IMG/VR virus record: IMGVR_UViG_3300028676_000005
Span: 62,001 to 126,000 of that record
Direction: 5' to 3' (one strand)
Length of the DNA stretch: 64,000 nucleotides
Under the pieces are notes generated by a model. It searched no databases and had not been told where the DNA came from. It worked only from the letters and a program-made list of their open reading frames with translations. This document shows positions 4,036 to 63,370 of the stretch, piece by piece (the stretch's first letter is position 1; each line of letters begins with the position of its first letter). Made by a program: the position numbers and the translations under genes.

Positions 4036-4719
4036 TTAGCCCATCCGTTTGTTGATGTTGCTATCCAAGTGCCGTGCACGAAACAGATAATAAACCGTCT
4101 GTAGTACTTTGGCAATGGACCCTTTACGAAGGCTTGCGTTGGTGTTAGTCTTACCGGTGGTTAACAGGTCATTCTTGTAATGACGCAGTGCATCCAAGTC
4201 GCCACCTTTAACGTTGTACAATTCGTTGGACATGATGTCCAGGCCCAAGTTACGAAGAACAGTAATCTCAGGCTGACTCACGCCAGTACTACGACTGTCA
4301 CCCATTACTTGGCCGGTGAGGTCATCAATGTTGTGGTCGTTAGTCGCAGCACCAAACTTGGTTACCAGCATCTGACGTTGTTTACGGATACGCACCAGGC
4401 CGGTAATTGCGGTGTGCGGTGTAACAGACTTAATCCCGGTGTCACCGTCATAGACAACCAACTGCTGCTCATACTCAACGCCATACTTCTTGGCAAGACG
4501 TTGAATAACCGCAAAGTCAATCATCTCTTTACGGTCCCAGTTGCTAATCCAAACACTGAGTGGTTTACCCGCCTCAATAGCAACTACGATGTCGTCTAAC
4601 TGTTTATCGTTAAGAACAGCAAACAGCTTGCGGTAAATTTTGCCATTACCACCACCAGGAGTAAGCGCGTCCATAAACTCCAGGATGAACTTCTCAAAAC
4701 CTGCACGATTACCAGCCAT
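4036..4719 (-). CDS. Virion RNA polymerase beta subunit, C-terminal fragment (phiKZ gp149-like)
   Basis: IDDLTGQVMGDSRSTGVSQPEITVLRNLG...ELYNVKGGD aligns with the RpoB C-terminus ([31 protein letters not shown]...EMLTVKSDD). Lies next to uvsX as in phiKZ-like phages. Confidence 0.85.
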   Translation of the reverse strand: MAGNRAGFEKFILEFMDALTPGGGNGKIYRKLFAVLNDKQLDDIVVAIEAGKPLSVWISNWDRKEMIDFAVIQRLAKKYGVEYEQQLVVYDGDTGIKSVTPHTAITGLVRIRKQRQMLVTKFGAATNDHNIDDLTGQVMGDSRSTGVSQPEITVLRNLGLDIMSNELYNVKGGDLDALRHYKNDLLTTGKTNTNASLRKGSIAKVLQTVYYLFRARHLDSNINKRMG

Positions 4720-35530: not shown

Positions 35531-36598
35531 TTAGCCTTTAGTAAGAGAAGTAAGAATGGCGTTAGCTACTTCGGTACGAACGTTAATATTGTTTTTGGTA
35601 TCGGGTAGATTGTTTTTGTAATCAGGATGACTGAACATATAGGCGTCAACCATGTCACGCATGATATTAGTTTTGGGGTCACCAATGTTGCGTTTAATAA
35701 CGTGCTCTTCTTCAGTAGTGGTAATTTCTTCGTAAAGCTTTTTGAGCAGATCTTTGGCACTCCACTGACCGCTTGCCCAGTTAGAACCCCAGCTGTTATT
35801 TTCAGCGTGATACCAGACATCCAGGATAGCACTGTAGCTATTGAACAAGAGGTTGATCTTGTTCATTAAACCCGCTTCAGGAAAGATGCTGGAAGACATT
35901 GGCTGTTTAATTGGAAAGGCGATACCAGACCCAAAGTATTTGGACTTGGAGATAACCACAAGAGAGAACTTGTCCTTGAGCCCAAATTCGTCATCGTCAA
36001 AAGGAACGTAAATTTGATGTTTCTTCAACAGGTGACGAACCAGCTCCACGTAAATGTGCCAGCGCTTACTGTAAGTAATCGGCAAGCCGAACCCAAAAAC
36101 AATTTCAAGGGAGGTCATCTTGCTGCTAAGACCGCGTTCTGAAGCAAGTCTTACGAGCATGGACCGGCTAGGGTTTTCTGGGAAATAGAGCGACTCACAC
36201 AGACGTGGCAAGTGTGCTTTAAGACGAAACTCAGCCATGACCTCCTGAGACTCTTCTACGGTCTCTTTAACTACTGGCTGAAGATTGGCATCAACACCAG
36301 GGTAACGGCCCTCCAGCACTGCTATGCGCCGTGACATCCAGCGCAGACGGTCCTTGGCGATCTCACCCAACATGCTCTTGCAGACATAGTCGCCGTTGGT
36401 GCGATGCGCGTCAATCATCATTGCCGTGTCACGTTCGTCACTGATGGTAGACATCATCGAAAGTTTGTTAGCCAACTCATCGTCACTGAAAAGATGAGCA
36501 CCAGCTAGATCTTCACGAGGAAGACCAACGTAACGTGGATGCGGATCTTCAAGACCGTCTTTCAACCAACGCATATCAACTACTTCTTTAACAGCCAT
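35531..36598 (-). CDS. Two-domain hypothetical protein
   Basis: 355 aa; N-domain resembles 58855-59244 and C-domain resembles 34469-35137. Confidence 0.8.
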   Translation of the reverse strand: MAVKEVVDMRWLKDGLEDPHPRYVGLPREDLAGAHLFSDDELANKLSMMSTISDERDTAMMIDAHRTNGDYVCKSMLGEIAKDRLRWMSRRIAVLEGRYPGVDANLQPVVKETVEESQEVMAEFRLKAHLPRLCESLYFPENPSRSMLVRLASERGLSSKMTSLEIVFGFGLPITYSKRWHIYVELVRHLLKKHQIYVPFDDDEFGLKDKFSLVVISKSKYFGSGIAFPIKQPMSSSIFPEAGLMNKINLLFNSYSAILDVWYHAENNSWGSNWASGQWSAKDLLKKLYEEITTTEEEHVIKRNIGDPKTNIMRDMVDAYMFSHPDYKNNLPDTKNNINVRTEVANAILTSLTKG

Positions 36599-45188: not shown

Positions 45189-46817
45189 TTAGTGTGTGCT
45201 AACAGCAAACAGCTTGCTGGTGATCAACACTGAACTCAGGTTAGCCAGGATTTTGGCAGTTTGCATACCGCCTTTCAACGCTACAACCGAAGCATGTGCT
45301 GTGTCGTAGATACCCAGATCTTCAGGGTAACCAATTTCCCCGTTTGCCAGGTTCACTACGGTAAGGTCACCTTTCAACAGTTCCTTAACGTCAGCGGTCA
45401 GACGTTCGTATTGCATTTCACACACTTCGACAATGTGTTCTAAAATGTTGAGCTTGTTTTGGTCTTTTTCGTTGTAGTATTGGGCAACCACTGTTCGGCA
45501 AGCCTTAATCAGGCTAGTGCCAACCCCAGGCAAGATGCCGTTAGTAAGCGCACTCTTAACAGCTTTGATAACGTCCTCAAAGCGGTCTTTACGCTCTTTA
45601 ACGTCAGCCTCGGTCTCACCGCCAACCCAGATGGTGATAACTTCACCAGAGAGGTTACGAACACGCTCCTCATCAAAACGAGCACGACGACCAAACCGAG
45701 TAGCCCCGTCATAATTACCCAGGGCTTCTTTAATGAGGTCAATACGAGTTTTGATACGCGCTGTTGCCGCAGCATTTGGAGTAAAGACAGAACGGCCAAC
45801 GCCGACGACCAATGGAGTTTCCGTTACCAGCATATTTCTAACGCCACTAACTTGTTCCAGAGCCGACCAAGATGGGACACCAAAGATAGCCGAGAGATCC
45901 TGCATGATCATGCTACCAACTGAACCGCCAGTACCATTAACCCGGCAGCCAATCATGCTCCTGGATGCACGTACGTTGTCAGGATGTTTGTTAAAGCCTA
46001 CTATGAAACTATCCATGGAAGTTTCGATGGAACGACAGATCAGAACAAACACAACATCAGACGCCTCAACAGGTTTAACGGACATAAGCTGTCCCATCAA
46101 CGCACTCAAACGTTCACCATCAGAATTACGAATGGAGTCATCCAGAATAATTGGGATGTATCGGTTGAGTGTACGCTTACCGCCGCTTGGCCCAGAATAA
46201 AGAGCTGAGTTGCTGTACTCCATGTTGATAGTAAGTCCGTTACCACGAACAATCTTGTCGGTATCTTCAACACCGTTAATCAGATCAAACGAAGGGAACG
46301 AATTAGGATTAGCACGATACTGGTCAATGACAATCTGGCTCAACCCTTCATCATTGTTAGACGAAGTAAGAGCCAGTTTGAAAAGCCGATCATCATTAAC
46401 ATCAATAATGATTGCCTGCTCACGCAAAGAGTGAATCAACTTTTCGCCAACTTCTTCGATAAACCGTTGGTCGCGATAGGTTGGATACCCACGGAACAGA
46501 TTGTAGAACGCCGAAGTCAGCATGATGGTAGTGGTGGTGCCGTCACCACATTCTTCATCAGTCTTGATTGGTGCTTGAGTCATGATCTTGTTGACCACTT
46601 CTTCACGCGGGTCGTTGAATGTAATTGCACGAGCAACGGTTACGCCATCTTTGGTAACCTTAGTGCTGTTACCGGTGGTGAGTACTGCCAGACGACCGTT
46701 AGGACCCATCGTGGCGGTTACAGCCTGGTCTACAGTCTCGACCACTTTGGTTACCATTGTTCTTACATCAGCGTCCAGAGTAATGAACTGAACGGCACCA
46801 TTTTTAACTTCCGACAT
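45189..46817 (-). CDS. groEL: Phage GroEL-like chaperonin
   Basis: TMGPNGR, TKDGVTVA, GDGTTT, ERKDRFED and GILPGVG motifs; 542 aa; no GGM tail. Confidence 0.95.
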   Translation of the reverse strand: MSEVKNGAVQFITLDADVRTMVTKVVETVDQAVTATMGPNGRLAVLTTGNSTKVTKDGVTVARAITFNDPREEVVNKIMTQAPIKTDEECGDGTTTTIMLTSAFYNLFRGYPTYRDQRFIEEVGEKLIHSLREQAIIIDVNDDRLFKLALTSSNNDEGLSQIVIDQYRANPNSFPSFDLINGVEDTDKIVRGNGLTINMEYSNSALYSGPSGGKRTLNRYIPIILDDSIRNSDGERLSALMGQLMSVKPVEASDVVFVLICRSIETSMDSFIVGFNKHPDNVRASRSMIGCRVNGTGGSVGSMIMQDLSAIFGVPSWSALEQVSGVRNMLVTETPLVVGVGRSVFTPNAAATARIKTRIDLIKEALGNYDGATRFGRRARFDEERVRNLSGEVITIWVGGETEADVKERKDRFEDVIKAVKSALTNGILPGVGTSLIKACRTVVAQYYNEKDQNKLNILEHIVEVCEMQYERLTADVKELLKGDLTVVNLANGEIGYPEDLGIYDTAHASVVALKGGMQTAKILANLSSVLITSKLFAVSTH

Positions 46818-50068: not shown

Positions 50069-50578
50069 TCAGAAATTGTTATGGTACATTGTTGTATAAA
50101 TGGGTCCCTCTTGTTCAAGGACAAACCCGAGTTTGAGATAGAGACGCAAAGCGTTGAGGTTAAAATTAACCACTGTAAGCTTTAAACGATCTTTAAAAAT
50201 CTCCATATGGTTACGGATCAAATAACTAGCAATACCCAAACCACGACAATCCTCACGAACAAACAATGCCGAAACAACGTTAGGCTCATCTACGGTCATG
50301 AATGCAACCGGGGTAATACCAAAATAAACCACGTACGTCCACTTGGCTTTCTTAGCACACATTACCCAATAAGTTTTAAGCTTGGGCATGTCGTCACGAG
50401 AATCTGCCGCCGAATGTTTCAGAGAGTCATTAGGAGCACCATTTTCAATAAACGTAAGGTCGCTACGTGTAAGCTCCATCCACAGTTCCATTACGTCCGT
50501 GGAAACTTTTGTAGGCACGCACTGGTGAGCGTACATCTTGAGCTTACCAAAGTGGTGAAGCTGTAAATCATTCTGCAT
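50069..50578 (-). CDS. GNAT acetyltransferase
   Basis: LFVREDCRGLGIA (motif A) and N.NALRLY.KLGF; start ATG 50578. Confidence 0.9.
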   Translation of the reverse strand: MQNDLQLHHFGKLKMYAHQCVPTKVSTDVMELWMELTRSDLTFIENGAPNDSLKHSAADSRDDMPKLKTYWVMCAKKAKWTYVVYFGITPVAFMTVDEPNVVSALFVREDCRGLGIASYLIRNHMEIFKDRLKLTVVNFNLNALRLYLKLGFVLEQEGPIYTTMYHNNF

Positions 50579-51218
50579 TGGTGAGTTCCTTACGGGCAAG
50601 CACCAGAAGTGATTCCAGTTCCTTCAAGGTGTAATGCCCGTCTACCACAGCGTGATCACCGCGGAAATCAATGTAGCTTTTGTCGGCCCCGTCAACGATG
50701 TTGTTGTGATATTCCATGTTAACCGGAGTAGTCGCTATTGATTCAGCAAAACCTGTAGCCCATGGTGACGCGGTCATGGTTACATCAAATCCAGTGCGGG
50801 TGGCCAGCTTAAGCAGCTCAGGATGATCCCCGCCCCATCTTGATACAAACTGTTGGTGCTCGTCCTTACGGAATTTCTTAAACTCCATAATGAGATTTGT
50901 TGCGATGCGCTGTTTGCGATACGGGGGGTCTACATACACCTCGAGTACTCGGTTACCAGCACAAATTACGTAGCCAACATATTCATTAGAAGTCGACAAA
51001 GAAGCATCAAAGGCAAGACCGATGTAATCCACACCAGTGTCAAGAATAGAAGAAAACTCTGCTATTCGCACGCCGTCACCAACGATATACGGAATATTGT
51101 AAAGTTTGCTAAATAGCGCAATAAACTTTTCAAATACGTGCTTGTAGAAAGTGGGGGAAAACTCTTTACCTGCTTCAGCTTTATGGTTGCGTTCAAAATC
51201 ACGATACATAATAGTCAT
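50568..51218 (-). CDS. GNAT acetyltransferase with an extra C-terminal module
   Basis: VYVDPPYRKQRIAT and LATRTGF; ATG 51218 with AGGAGG SD. Confidence 0.8.
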   Translation of the reverse strand: MTIMYRDFERNHKAEAGKEFSPTFYKHVFEKFIALFSKLYNIPYIVGDGVRIAEFSSILDTGVDYIGLAFDASLSTSNEYVGYVICAGNRVLEVYVDPPYRKQRIATNLIMEFKKFRKDEHQQFVSRWGGDHPELLKLATRTGFDVTMTASPWATGFAESIATTPVNMEYHNNIVDGADKSYIDFRGDHAVVDGHYTLKELESLLVLARKELTNAE

Positions 51219-51219
51219 G

Positions 51220-51720
51220 TTAGTCATCCTCCTTCTCAAGTTCTTGTTCTGCCAGTTCAACAATCGCCCTTAACTCATTAAGGGTATACCGCCCATCCAC
51301 AATTGCGTGTGTTCCGCGAAATTCGAGAAGACCCTGGTTACCCGACAGCACAACTCTTGGACTTGGTTGTTTGGGGGTGATGTAGTTACGTTGGAAATCC
51401 AACATGAACTCACCTACTTTACGATTCAACCCACCTTTAGCAATAAACATGTGCGTACAGCGAACATTAGAGCTATAAACATAACCAAGCATTTTGTTTT
51501 CTTTATCTGTCGCTATAATGATCCACTCTACTCCACCGCTAATCAGTTGTTGCCAAATTGCATCTGTGGGTTCAATGATCCGATGAGTACGATAGGCTAT
51601 GTTTTGGCAATACAGTTCCAAAAAACCTGGTTTGATCTTCTCATGGAACTCTGCGCTAAAATCGCTTGTAAGCGCATCCAGCATGCGATTGTGTTCATAC
51701 CGCGTAACAGTAATACCCAT
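51220..51720 (-). CDS. Degenerate/truncated GNAT paralogue
   Basis: Collinear with 50568-51218 (FSAEF, LGYV, MFI...NRKVG); shares the C-terminal FRG.HA.VDG.YTL.EL. Confidence 0.65.
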   Translation of the reverse strand: MGITVTRYEHNRMLDALTSDFSAEFHEKIKPGFLELYCQNIAYRTHRIIEPTDAIWQQLISGGVEWIIIATDKENKMLGYVYSSNVRCTHMFIAKGGLNRKVGEFMLDFQRNYITPKQPSPRVVLSGNQGLLEFRGTHAIVDGRYTLNELRAIVELAEQELEKEDD

Positions 51721-51748
51721 AAATAAAAAATCCTTAAAGAGGTGGTGA

Positions 51749-51769
51749 GTGGGTAGCAACGCTACCCAC
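51749..51769 (-). terminator. Hairpin terminator
   Basis: GTGGGTAGC/GCTACCCAC stem. Confidence 0.6.
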
Positions 51770-52606: not shown

Positions 52607-53542
52607 TTACCCCTTGTTTTTTGGATTTTCATAAGACAGGGTGTTTGCGTACTTTTCGGCAGCAGTCTCATGATTACTCTTAAGCAGGTTGTAATTTTTC
52701 ATGATTACTTCCCGCATGATGGTGTTGCCATTCTGGGTACAGACATAAATAGCCTGGTTACCAGCAGAGTCGTGAGCGATATGTAGCACACGGTTGTCAC
52801 TGGTAACGTGTGTACGATGATAAACGTCGCCCTCCATAAGAGCAGGAATGGTGACGTTGAAGCCTTCTGGGGCTTCTTTACCGCTCAGTGAATTCCAGAG
52901 AGAACGCGGGCCGGTCAGGGCTTCTGGAAGTTTAAAGCACGGACTGTCGTTAATAACGATTTCCGCACGGTTACCTTCTTTGTCCAACGGCATTTGGTCA
53001 TCAGGAATTACTGTGCAGATAACCCCACGATCACCGTGCATATCGGTGAGTTTGTAAGGATACTTGTGTTCGCCCAAAGCAGCGCGACCTTTGTCAGTAA
53101 GACATTGTGAAGTCAAACAGTCGTGATCAAGTAATGCAAGATCCAGACCTTCACCACGAATGTCCATTTGTTCTTGTTGACCTGGATGAATCAGACCGGC
53201 AGTTTCTGCATTGGCCTTTGCATTCATTGCGTCGTAAATGAGTTGATCCGCTCCAGGCATGACACCTTCAAAATCAGCGTTCATCCCCTTTACATGTCGG
53301 TGTGGGGTAATTGCATATGACACACCGCCAATCGATACCCAATCGCCAGTGATATGAATACCACAAAAGCCCCAAAAGGACTTTACCACTTTGCGCATAT
53401 GACCTTGCATTTGGTCAATGCCCAAAACAATGGACGCACGATCTTCCGCAGAGGCCTGATTCCAGAAGTCCATAACAAACTTTTGGATTGCTTCGTTACC
53501 TTCAACGTCAGCCAAGTCTTTGATGAAATCAAAAATGTTCAT
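52607..53542 (-). CDS. Mosaic protein with RNA polymerase active-site-like peptides
   Basis: 311 aa, GAGG SD; NADFEG and KLTDMHGDRGVIC...DDQMPLDKEGNRAEIVIN. Confidence 0.8.
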   Translation of the reverse strand: MNIFDFIKDLADVEGNEAIQKFVMDFWNQASAEDRASIVLGIDQMQGHMRKVVKSFWGFCGIHITGDWVSIGGVSYAITPHRHVKGMNADFEGVMPGADQLIYDAMNAKANAETAGLIHPGQQEQMDIRGEGLDLALLDHDCLTSQCLTDKGRAALGEHKYPYKLTDMHGDRGVICTVIPDDQMPLDKEGNRAEIVINDSPCFKLPEALTGPRSLWNSLSGKEAPEGFNVTIPALMEGDVYHRTHVTSDNRVLHIAHDSAGNQAIYVCTQNGNTIMREVIMKNYNLLKSNHETAAEKYANTLSYENPKNKG

Positions 53543-53564
53543 GGTGTTACCTCATTAATTAAAT

Positions 53565-55260: not shown

Positions 55261-55944
55261 CTAAATGACTTTTAAGTCATTCAAATCCAGCAAAGTGAAT
55301 TTACCAATACCAGGACGCCACCCTTCGGTATCAATGTAGTAGGTGTTACCCAGCTGGAGCATTTCCGGAACCGGGTTATGTCCCACCACTACCGCAAAGA
55401 TATCTTTGATTGGAGTAGCGTCCTTCAAGTTAAAACGAATACGGCTGTGGAAGCACTCATTCATTACAAGCTTGTGAGACTTGCGACGAAAGTTGTTCTC
55501 AAGGGCGTACACTAACTCAGCCCAGCTATCAAAATTACAGGCAGCATGAACAATACCAACGGTACCTTGTTTAGTGGCTACCTCAATTAAAACAGGCAGT
55601 TCAGTAAACTTGTCTACCAGCATGTCCTGATCCCTGAAATCAAGATGTTTGAACCACGCCCCCTTGTCTTTGTGGTTAAGCCATTTAGGTCGTGTAGCGT
55701 AGTTGACTAAATGGTTATCGTGGTTCCCACGTACCGATTCGGCATTATGCTTAGCAAGCCAAGCAGCAGCTTCATGAGACTTAGGACCACGATCTACCAA
55801 GTCACCCACAATAAACAACCGGTCTACTGCTTTGTTGTAGCCAATGCGTTCAAGCTCTGCATCAACTTCATCAAAGTGACCATGCACGTCCCCACAAGCA
55901 ATATCCCGTCCTAGAGTGTTAACCCCGAATCTTTTAACATACAT
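55261..55944 (-). CDS. Ser/Thr protein phosphatase (lambda NinI/PphA-like PPP family)
   Basis: GDVHG, GDLVDRGP, RGNHD, VHA, VGH and YIDT motifs. Confidence 0.93.
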   Translation of the reverse strand: MYVKRFGVNTLGRDIACGDVHGHFDEVDAELERIGYNKAVDRLFIVGDLVDRGPKSHEAAAWLAKHNAESVRGNHDNHLVNYATRPKWLNHKDKGAWFKHLDFRDQDMLVDKFTELPVLIEVATKQGTVGIVHAACNFDSWAELVYALENNFRRKSHKLVMNECFHSRIRFNLKDATPIKDIFAVVVGHNPVPEMLQLGNTYYIDTEGWRPGIGKFTLLDLNDLKVI

Positions 55945-62776: not shown

Positions 62777-63370
62777 TTAGCTCCAGAAAGCCTTACCAGG
62801 CTTAAAGTAGACTTGAGCACGATTAAATACGCAGTACTCAACCTCCCCCGCAGAGCCGTGCCCACTGCCGGCGTGAATAGCACCATCGTAGCCAGCTTGG
62901 ACCAATCGACGTATTTCAAAGACGCTGTCGAAGAAACGATAAGCTTGGAAATAAAGATTATTGATATCTTCACCGGCTAACAAATAAGCTTTGACATCCG
63001 CATATTTATTATTAGCGTTAATCCGGTCTCGCCAATTATCAGTCTCCTCAATGTACTTTGAGAAGCGCAAGGCGATACGTTGGGCATCAATTGAACCCAG
63101 AGTGGCGGTAATGTGTTCAAACTCCAGGAACGCGCCCTGAGGTTGGTTAATGAACGGGTTTGCCATCAAGAGGTGCACTGGGAAAATGCGCGACGTATAG
63201 TAGTTACCGTCATTCTCGACAGTATCTGCATAAATCTCGGCGGTCTTAAGACTACCGAAGTAAATACGCCGCATGCGATAAAACGGTTCGATCTGATGCG
63301 GGTGGTTGCACTCACCCCGGTAAAGGGTAAGTGGATTGCCCTCCGCATCCTTAAGAAAGAAAGGATTCAT
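62777..63370 (-). CDS. ADP-ribosyltransferase-like protein (ART-PolyVal type)
   Basis: D.EGNPL.LYRG, IYF...A..YA, PV.L...NP, GYDG.I and EYCVF...QV. Confidence 0.75.
   Translation of the reverse strand: MNPFFLKDAEGNPLTLYRGECNHPHQIEPFYRMRRIYFGSLKTAEIYADTVENDGNYYTSRIFPVHLLMANPFINQPQGAFLEFEHITATLGSIDAQRIALRFSKYIEETDNWRDRINANNKYADVKAYLLAGEDINNLYFQAYRFFDSVFEIRRLVQAGYDGAIHAGSGHGSAGEVEYCVFNRAQVYFKPGKAFWS

Follow-up and report, generated by a model that had tools for sequence, protein, structure and literature searches.

The roles of the two barrels of RNA polymerase (RNAP) have been summarised elsewhere (PMC7824862). Here we describe a 311-residue open reading frame (ORF) at positions 52607-53542, minus strand, of a 64,000-nucleotide stretch of jumbo-phage DNA (positions 62,001 to 126,000 of IMG/VR record IMGVR_UViG_3300028676_000005; hereafter the window, meaning this whole stretch). 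The ORF carries a segment derived from a phage RNAP beta subunit together with a plausible counterpart of the beta-prime catalytic loop, and encodes a conserved mosaic accessory protein.

The closest described relative is the beta subunit of the non-virion RNAP (nvRNAP) of jumbo phages (phiKZ gp71-73, 7OGP chain C; RisingSun gp43; L234:13391-15601 in the phage studied here), with which the ORF shares a 42-residue hairpin with the lysine positions, the MP-x-D-x-x-G loop and the next strand. In contrast, the rest of the ~700-residue subunit, i.e. the first barrel half, the flap/sandwich-barrel hybrid motif (SBHM) insert and the N- and C-terminal regions, is missing, the second lysine is an arginine, and the module is set in unrelated domains. 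The likeness to the N-terminal nvRNAP beta-prime subunit (phiKZ gp55; RisingSun gp29; L234:1763-3385) consists of VK-x-x-NADF-(D/E)-G, maybe followed by a displaced third Asp and then Q-(L/M); however, the second Asp is mostly Glu in the ORF family, V/I-x-P-G-x intervenes ahead of the putative third Asp, similarity is not detectable beyond ~10 residues, and no barrel is predicted. Both barrel signatures within one polypeptide are also a feature of single-chain two-barrel RNAPs (YonO, QDE-1-like RNA-dependent RNAPs, crAss-like gp66 and the P23-45 TMP-RNAP). In these enzymes both barrels are complete and the chains far longer. Moreover, the beta-like element comes first in the fused beta-beta-prime phage RNAPs examined, whereas the ORF has fragments only, in reverse order, within 311 residues and without a predicted barrel. 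Designed homodimeric half double-psi beta barrel (DPBB) peptides (43 residues, PMC10941967) are of similar size and share the strand-strand-turn-strand unit, natural versions of 59-75 residues being present in the ORF family, but those peptides are laboratory designs. Finally, as in mimicry or pseudoenzyme regulators (dead paralogues, phage mimics), enzyme-derived sequence is kept under selection without catalytic competence; the known cases retain a whole domain, though, whereas the ORF family has short loop or half-domain fragments of two subunits, and these are shuffled. A limited literature search yielded no description of a conserved small-protein family in which segments from the catalytic centre of nvRNAP beta, and apparently of beta-prime too, are shuffled as modules.

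The ORF and its parts

The ORF begins with an ATG, according to the ORF list and the sequence, lies in a long series of small minus-strand genes, and is separated by 22 nucleotides from the end of the upstream ORF in an operon-like arrangement, with no apparent promoter of its own. The 39-mer YKLTDMHGDRGVICTVIPDDQMPLDKEGNRAEIVINDSP, which the sequence-only reading had singled out as RpoB-like, spans residues 163-201 (52940-53056), and NADFEG spans residues 88-93 (53264-53281); that reading had placed both, and the ORF itself, exactly. The following parts were delineated with the evidence given in brackets, including AlphaFold2 (AF2) models scored by predicted local distance difference test (pLDDT).

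52607..53542, minus strand: whole ORF, mosaic accessory protein (ORF list, sequence)
53550..53553, minus strand: ribosome-binding site GAGG, 7 nucleotides before the ATG (read from the sequence)
53309..53542, minus strand: N-terminal domain 'type A', residues 1-78, predicted as four helices and a three-stranded meander (AF2, pLDDT 79-96)
53213..53293, minus strand: beta-prime-loop-like module, residues 84-110, VKGMNADFEGVMPGADQLIYDAMNAKA, holding NADFEG and the invariant D99-Q100 (13 invariant columns; hhalign)
53093..53128, minus strand: linker motif CLTSQCLTDKGR, residues 139-150 (alignments A1, A2 and A4)
52931..53056, minus strand: beta-derived module, residues 163-204, second half of the beta double-psi barrel (PHROG 3295, PDB 7ogp_C, 15 invariant columns)
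52673..52924, minus strand: C-terminal beta-rich domain, residues 207-290 (AF2, pLDDT 86-97; blastp to the gp70 orthologue)
53069..53524, minus strand: exchangeable cassette, codons 7-158 (blastn and read-level joint 53068/53525 in a lake-water relative)

The linker motif CLTSQCLTDKGR is kept in most family members and missing from P0003 and P0004. An intein-like reading of CLTSQCLTDKG was rejected, as no intein-like C-terminal junction was seen by eye and the motif is missing in P0003/P0004, and a four-Cys zinc site was dropped, the cysteines not being conserved. The identical 311-residue protein is encoded on 15 metagenome contigs. No near-identical DNA was found among GenBank phages, and the search for RNA evidence of expression returned only wastewater RNA runs with 5-7 % of words, which are not usable.

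A module related to the nvRNAP beta subunit

Residues 162-203 match PHROG 3295 'RNA polymerase beta subunit' with an E-value of 6.5e-14. A profile of seven orthologues, searched against the PDB, found phiKZ nvRNAP gp71-73 (7ogp_C residues 381-427, E 4.8e-13), and likewise the AR9 nvRNAP beta subunit (E 1e-5) and E. coli beta 1065-1099 (E 7e-4). In tblastn searches with the ORF, the beta-like stretch matches annotated beta genes of 80 jumbo phages. With Pfam RNA_pol_Rpb2_6, the ORF scores 15.7 bits over profile positions 226-260 of 373, which does not reach the cutoff of 23.4, while the best match to this profile among 28 family members covers the same short stretch with an E-value of 3.8e-5. 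Library, PDB-profile and tblastn searches revealed no RNAP similarity outside residues 158-237, with the beta homology limited to residues 162-204. These matches identify residues 163-204 as genuinely homologous to one half of the double-psi barrel of nvRNAP beta, namely its second strand-strand-turn-strand unit. The RpoB-like segment first noticed by eye is thus far above chance, and the accompanying observation that its flanks lack RNAP similarity holds, all matches lying within the limits just given.

At the catalytic-lysine positions of the ORF the first lysine is kept (K164) and the second is replaced (R172), as the sequence-only reading had also noted. Across the family, the first position is occupied by K, Q, S, E or R and the second by R, K or N, with R172 invariant in close orthologues. 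The alignments show that these positions vary, which argues against catalysis, and that the conserved part is a Gly/Pro/hydrophobic pattern which presumably determines the fold.

The module is identical to the phage's own beta at 19/42 positions (45 %), to RisingSun gp43 at 23/42 (55 %) and to P0020, a beta subunit from outside the EL clade, at 22/36 (61 %); a hand count on consensus strings gives 23/42 for the general chimallivirus beta consensus against the 19/42 for the own beta. Mean identities to the beta groups are 0.43, 0.40 and 0.39, i.e. the differences are small. The family consensus has TD-HG--GVIC-V-PD---P-D--GNRA in common with the general chimallivirus consensus and the tail I-N-(N/D)-x-P-x-F-(K/R) in common with the EL clade, and in a FastTree phylogeny of 42 columns the accessory modules group with EL-clade beta subunits with moderate support (0.87). 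Because the module is less similar to the phage's own beta than to P0020, capture of the beta fragment is old or from another lineage. The idea that the gene was assembled from fragments of the phage's own RNAP genes survives only in part: the module does come, by capture or duplication, from the nvRNAP beta gene of a phage, but a recent capture from the own gene is contradicted by these identities.

A hidden Markov model (HMM) of the module, run over the whole RisingSun genome, detects only gp43, the nvRNAP-type beta, and gp173, and the module is therefore nvRNAP-like rather than virion RNAP-like. In phiKZ (63,275-66,595), a gp72-carrying insertion interrupts the gene for nvRNAP beta within this 42-residue segment, gp71 ending with ..FKMTDFHG.. 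and gp73 starting with ..DMPIDENG..; the segment copied into accessory proteins is therefore also a mobile-element insertion site. We take gp72 to be an intron-borne HNH endonuclease. phiKZ gp71-73 has been called a spliced fusion (preprint 10.64898/2026.09.21.753271).

A putative beta-prime-like loop

NADFEG is kept in all orthologues, with position 92 being Glu in 6/7 sequences of alignment A1 and Asp in P0002, and belongs to an invariant block of 13 columns (N88, A89, D90, F91, G93, P96, G97, D99, Q100, D104, N107, A108 and K109). The bacterial beta-prime loop reads NADFDGDQM. In the ORF, the carboxylates are arranged as D90-F-E92-G-V, lacking the contiguous DxDxD triad, and D99 follows only after a five-residue insertion. 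Pfam RNA_pol_Rpb1_2 matches none of the 28 family members, no profile library assigns the loop to beta-prime, and the module HMM yields only ~8 bits on genuine beta-prime loops. Alignment of the family with 61 phage beta-prime segments using hhalign gave a probability of 86.5 % (P 4.6e-6) and a score of 36, compared with scores of 8-15 for reversed or column-shuffled controls, and pairs NADFEG-[V/I-x-P-G-x]-D-Q-(L/M) with NADFDG-D-x-M, so that D99 takes the third-Asp position after the insertion. The phage's own beta-prime segment VKIQNADFDGDNEF and the ORF segment VKGMNADFEGVMPG have VK-x-x-NADF-(D/E)-G in common (7/10), and by our own estimate from residue frequencies the chance of the hexapeptide in one 311-residue protein is ~2e-5. 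It is plausible that the module derives from the beta-prime loop, the more so because NADFEG co-occurs with the proven beta fragment.

Conservation and selection

The orthologue set comprises five full-length proteins (48-63 % identity) and P0006 (33 %, with 76 % of the query aligned), all of which keep both modules. Together the two modules span 68 residues, yet they contain 28 of the 30 invariant columns (Fisher P 5.5e-19), 13 in the NADFEG module and 15 in the beta module. Between the ORF and P0006, 20/22 residues of the NADFEG module are identical, 9 of them with different codons, and between the ORF and P0004 the beta module has 36/42 identical residues with 11 codon changes. Since identical residues are specified by different codons, conservation is at the protein level: this is a real gene whose product is under selection.

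The graft is thereby seen to be under purifying selection in orthologues. Neutral debris, an outcome that the sequence-only reading had named as a refutation, was rejected, as the motifs are the best-conserved parts, show synonymous turnover and are intact on the 15 contigs and in orthologues. Conservation at the DNA level, e.g. as a decoy of a homing-endonuclease target, was considered because the phiKZ gp72 insertion interrupts the beta gene in the same segment, and is ruled out by the different codons for identical residues.

Predicted structure and the phage's own RNAP

The AF2 prediction, based on a 28-sequence alignment, is confident for residues 1-78 (pLDDT 79-96) and 210-285 (86-97), with the intervening region, which holds both motifs, at 36-57 and the NADFEG module below 50. 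For the compact 153-residue relative P0009 (mean pLDDT 59), the beta module is predicted as a hairpin, and the N-x-D-F-D-G loop again falls below 50. In the beta region (pLDDT 40-76) the models contain a hairpin only, without a barrel, and lack the complete six-stranded barrel with its SBHM/flap insert. A Foldseek search of the AF2 model against the PDB returned nothing below E 0.5, and look-alikes of the ORF in the ESM Atlas were not informative. The two flanking domains are hence predicted to be novel, with a low-confidence motif region in-between. Two complete DPBB domains with a catalytic triad in one chain were detected neither by AF2 nor by Foldseek (none at E<0.5), and the models predict that the ORF is not a two-barrel enzyme; alone, the RNAP-like modules would form no barrels and could not make a polymerase. 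The sequence-only reading had judged 311 residues too short for a two-barrel enzyme, which agrees with the absence of a barrel and the low pLDDT of the motif region, and the structure prediction that it had suggested for a partial double-psi barrel gave none, the beta module appearing only as the hairpin in P0009.

The same genome (JGI record Ga0302174_10000001) also carries an intact 736-residue nvRNAP beta gene (L234:13391-15601), with its own segment FKMTGMNGDKGVIVRIIPQWMAPRAPDGTYADIVINNIPAFRRQ, and an intact 540-residue beta-prime N-terminal subunit (L234:1763-3385), with NADFDGD in VKIQNADFDGDNEF, adjoining the chimallin gene. The phage's beta was located by a C-terminal sub-alignment; it departs from clade patterns and was missed by several pattern scans. 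P0141 was rejected as the beta of this phage, its locus being visibly G+C-rich where printed, as opposed to ~45 % G+C for the window, and stemming from another sample. Because the phage keeps complete nvRNAP beta and beta-prime segments, the ORF is accessory and not a missing nvRNAP piece; the canonical beta and beta-prime, with the segments just given, equally dispose of the ORF as a split-subunit piece. The 58 PDB sequences that the A1 profile matched at E up to 10 include no chain of the fifth nvRNAP subunit (phiKZ gp68 / AR9 gp226). The positional gp68 counterpart has 515 residues (L234:8438-9985), its homology to gp68 not being verified by BLAST.

A C-terminal domain shared with the nvRNAP locus

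Residues 226-277 of the ORF match the C-terminal extension of a 487-residue protein (L223:2417-3880 = L234:11448-12911; blastp, 35 % identity, E 3e-6), encoded just upstream of the phage's beta gene. Based on its BLAST match to phiKZ gp70 (E 8e-14) and on the gene order of the locus (SbcD ... gp68, gp69/Imp1, gp70, beta, beta-prime, helicase), this protein can be assigned as the phiKZ gp70 orthologue. The C-domain is also present in P0008, P0012, P0013, P0024, P0039 and P0036, and tblastn of P0039 matches the same place in RisingSun gp41 (E 2.5e-8). When the gp70 orthologue is used in tblastn, matches in many other chimalliviruses end near residue 315 of 487, and the extension is therefore specific to EL-clade phages and some relatives (e.g. 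Klebsiella phage Miami). Taken together, the beta, beta-prime-like and C-domain matches relate three of the four modules either to nvRNAP subunits or to a protein encoded at the nvRNAP/import locus.

Following its C-domain module, the gp70 orthologue has a long Gln/Met-rich low-complexity tail (..QQPAVQQNQLQQHQ.., ..MMAMMGLTPQQLMMMQMAGGMMQPQ..). phiKZ gp70 has been listed among nuclear proteins, with a locus order of Imp6-gp68-Imp1-gp70, and pull-downs showed no binding between it and Imp1 (preprint 10.1101/2024.03.27.586873).

Portable modules and cassette exchange

An exhaustive HMMER search identified 36 proteins at E<=1e-3, many of them genuine beta subunits of ~660-820 residues, and a profile search with the middle region 21 proteins. 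The beta-like module recurs in ~25 small jumbo-phage proteins, and the family displays the following architectures.

N-domain, NADFEG, beta module and C-domain: 311-ORF type, 311-340 residues
NADFEG, beta module and FRRP..NWLN tail: P0009, P0007, P0014
Other N-domains with the beta module: P0023/P0158; P0159/P0160/P0162/P0164
Tandem or 1.5 beta modules: P0016, P0007
ORFs of 59-75 residues, essentially the module alone: P0019 (13 contigs), P0030 (261-kb contig), P0033
NADFEG without the beta module: P0021, P0161
C-domain before the beta module: P0008; C-domain matching in several stretches: P0036

Among the 12 proteins with the NADFEG module, ten also carry the beta module, and several architectures have the beta module without NADFEG. 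The type-A N-domain also stands alone in proteins of 108-146 residues (P0010, P0011, P0015 and P0018), the accessory member P0159 is encoded alongside an intact beta on a contig of 233,283 bp, and P0024 (491 residues) combines a decayed beta module with the C-domain. On a lake-water contig that is 96-98.5 % identical on both sides, window positions 53069-53524 are replaced by 474 unalignable bases, as detected by blastn (L002 vs L004) and at the read level, where the joint 53068/53525 skips 456 letters and has 474 between. The replacement cassette encodes an alternative 'type B' N-domain and keeps NADFEG-PG-DQ, with its right-hand junction four codons before the beta module. The modules are portable.

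RisingSun gp173 (hypothetical, 232 residues; L195:5418-6116, record 155,418-156,116) ends in a degenerate module, FKLTEGDQSKGVIVQVLEDHDLPHNEKGEIAEV (HMM E 1.8e-7), and is the only experimentally tractable relative found; the accessible part of the lysate mass-spectrometry table (PMC6034870) does not list it. Many IMG/VR loci (L091-L169) encode giant fused beta-beta-prime RNAPs of 1,400-2,500 residues with ..VKGFNADFDGD.., which surfaced only because the NADF(D/E)G pattern served as a probe. Elsewhere in the window, an unrelated 355-residue ORF at 35531-36598 (minus strand) matches the N-terminal 125 residues of P0024 (41 % identity, E 7e-17), and module shuffling therefore involves other phage genes.

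The phage and the neighbourhood of the ORF

The ORF-bearing genome belongs to an uncultivated jumbo phage of ~229.5 kb, the identical protein being encoded on JGI record Ga0302174_10000001 (229,556 bp) and on IMG/VR contig 3300028676_000005 (229,429 bp), found in many peat metagenomes and, in a variant form, in lake water. Its closest cultured relatives are Pseudomonas phage EL and the Erwinia phages RisingSun and Joad (virion protein ~52 % identity), with gene order kept at 4-17 kb of the window. Chimallin is encoded in the same genome (Pfam PF25677), and a nuclear shell protein and PhuZ are annotated in RisingSun. Together with an EL-like GroEL-type chaperonin, these features identify the phage, on sequence grounds, as a nucleus-forming chimallivirus of the EL/RisingSun clade. 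Other features of the window are as follows.

4036-4719, minus strand: RNAP beta-fragment subunit, 227 residues (phrog_3233, E 5.7e-73; 56 % identity to RisingSun gp220)
45189-46817, minus strand: GroEL-type chaperonin, as in phage EL (phrog_5725, E 3.8e-112; Pfam Cpn60_TCP1 in relatives)
50069-51759, minus strand: three adjacent GNAT-like ORFs (only 50568-51263 scanned, sub-cutoff matches)
55261-55944, minus strand: calcineurin-like metallophosphatase (E 3e-14)
62777-63370, minus strand: ART-PolyVal-like protein, unconfirmed (E 9e-5, under the Pfam cutoff)

Orthologues of the ORF (33-63 % identity) share the order metallophosphatase ... ORF ... GNATs ... GroEL, and in every syntenic contig the GroEL-type gene follows the ORF at a distance of ~6 kb on the downstream side. 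The ART-PolyVal-like, metallophosphatase and GNAT-like genes belong to one minus-strand block with the ORF, a neighbourhood of the kind associated with host modification. A 169-residue neighbour in the relative L002 has clear GNAT matches. The 227-residue beta-fragment gene is a genuine split-RNAP gene inside the window, of a sequence unrelated to the 311-residue ORF. RisingSun gp185, which also has 311 residues and lies upstream of GroEL, was rejected as an orthologue, as there is no similarity. Given the cassette exchange and the ART-PolyVal-like (unconfirmed), GNAT-like and metallophosphatase neighbours, the locus may be a host-takeover or conflict region, the case for this being circumstantial.

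Discussion

Based on the combination of modules described above, the ORF encodes a conserved, non-enzymatic mosaic, and we tentatively propose that its most likely function is non-catalytic mimicry or docking related to nvRNAP, a reading that we infer and prefer while holding it with somewhat less than even confidence. The protein consists of four modules, i.e. a variable N-domain, an NADFDGD-like module, the 42-residue beta module and the C-domain shared with gp70. The two RNAP-like modules could serve as portable interaction or mimicry peptides that preserve how the catalytic-centre elements of beta and beta-prime are shaped locally, and would then bind a partner that normally contacts these elements, most plausibly a complementary, unassembled nvRNAP subunit fragment during assembly or nuclear import. 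The protein would in this manner operate as an RNAP-directed modulator or adaptor, with specificity likely supplied by the swappable N-terminal cassette. Import of each nvRNAP subunit requires the others, as would be expected if the subunits enter as a complex that is already assembled, at least in part (preprint 10.64898/2026.09.21.753271).

Several points weigh against this proposal. Contact of the ORF protein with RNAP is something we infer; in the assembled enzyme the segments are buried at the active centre, so that only unassembled subunits are bindable; and the conserved Gly/Pro/hydrophobic pattern may fit a self-sufficient small domain equally well. The low AF2 confidence, too, may reflect the shallow alignments (16-28 sequences) and not real disorder. 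Furthermore, deletion of the six hexapeptide columns lowers the hhalign score to 16 (P 0.03), i.e. once the hexapeptide is left out, there is little statistical support for relating this module to beta-prime. The sequence-only reading had called NADFEG a decayed copy of the beta-prime loop; this remains plausible in view of VK..NADF.G and a possible displaced third Asp in PGxDQ, but the statistics depend on the hexapeptide.

A self-sufficient domain is at the heart of another explanation, possible though doubtful, according to which the 42-residue module homo-dimerises or pairs with a second copy into a small barrel, serving generic oligomerisation or nucleic-acid binding unrelated to RNAP function, with NADFEG being convergent. 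This would account for the 59-75-residue ORFs with little besides the module (P0019, P0030), for the tandem or 1.5 copies in P0016 and P0007, for the several architectures that have the module but not NADFEG, and for conserved positions that are structural (Gly, Pro, hydrophobic) and not the catalytic lysines; a designed 43-residue peptide, moreover, rebuilds the DPBB fold by homodimerisation (review PMC10941967). It leaves unexplained, however, why 10/12 NADFEG-module proteins carry the beta module, and why a third module is akin to a protein of the nvRNAP/Imp locus. We consider it rather improbable that the module is a natural free-standing half double-psi barrel which, folding by dimerisation or together with the NADF(D/E)G module, forms a miniature hybrid barrel that binds Mg2+ and a nucleotide or RNA 3' end. 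Even less probable is a minimal active centre in which D90, E92 and D99 together with K164 and R172 would bind Mg2+ and a nucleotide or RNA 3' end, making the ORF product a small protein for nucleotide binding or nucleotidyl transfer. Neither D90 nor D99 varies, position 92 varies only as stated above, hhalign places D99 at the third-Asp position and R172 is invariant among close orthologues, but no barrel scaffold is predicted, the lysine positions vary in the family (first also Q/S/E/R, second K/R/N), the modules occur apart (P0021 and P0161 without the beta module, many proteins without NADFEG), and the Pfam, PDB and Foldseek searches gave no enzyme match.

The exchange of parts could instead point to conflict. 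The RNAP catalytic-centre epitopes would then be a decoy, soaking up a host sensor, toxin, small-molecule inhibitor or competitor-phage factor aimed at the active centre of the phage RNAP, which we regard as unlikely. The swap of the N-terminal 150-codon cassette between 96-98.5 % identical genomes and the rampant module shuffling are typical of conflict genes, the neighbourhood contains GNATs, a phosphatase and the sub-threshold, unconfirmed ART-PolyVal match, and the module is closer to the general chimallivirus beta consensus (23/42) than to the phage's own, diverged beta (19/42), although the differences in identity between the beta groups are small. A limited literature search found no defence, inhibitor or sensor that recognises RNAP active-centre loops, and to our knowledge none is known that recognises these loops. 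JADA, which activates Avs5, has been described as a phage protein that is early and essential, with no RNAP link named in the abstract and outline. The least probable of the explanations, and one that is refuted for nvRNAP, is that the ORF supplies a catalytic segment to a split RNAP or is a decaying chimera. Jumbo-phage RNAP subunits are indeed split into several polypeptides (PMC7824862), and the window carries the 227-residue beta-fragment gene; however, these very segments are complete in the phage's own nvRNAP beta and beta-prime, and decay is at odds with motifs that are best conserved despite synonymous turnover, and with a gene that has stayed intact across 15 contigs as well as in five full-length orthologues that have diverged and one shorter relative.

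The preferred reading, mimicry or docking related to nvRNAP, bears on a general aspect of these phages: the split subunits of jumbo-phage RNAPs need assembly, and in nucleus-forming phages import as well. The family may offer a way to study how RNAP is assembled, regulated or drawn into conflict in such phages, with gp173 of the cultured relative RisingSun making experiments possible. It would also represent an example of active-site fragments, as opposed to whole domains, that have been exapted and kept under strong selection, and nature's own test of whether one half of a double-psi barrel is able to stand by itself. If true, such a free-standing half-barrel would be a living example of the half-barrel stage from which two-barrel polymerases are postulated to have arisen, put to new use by jumbo phages as a portable domain.

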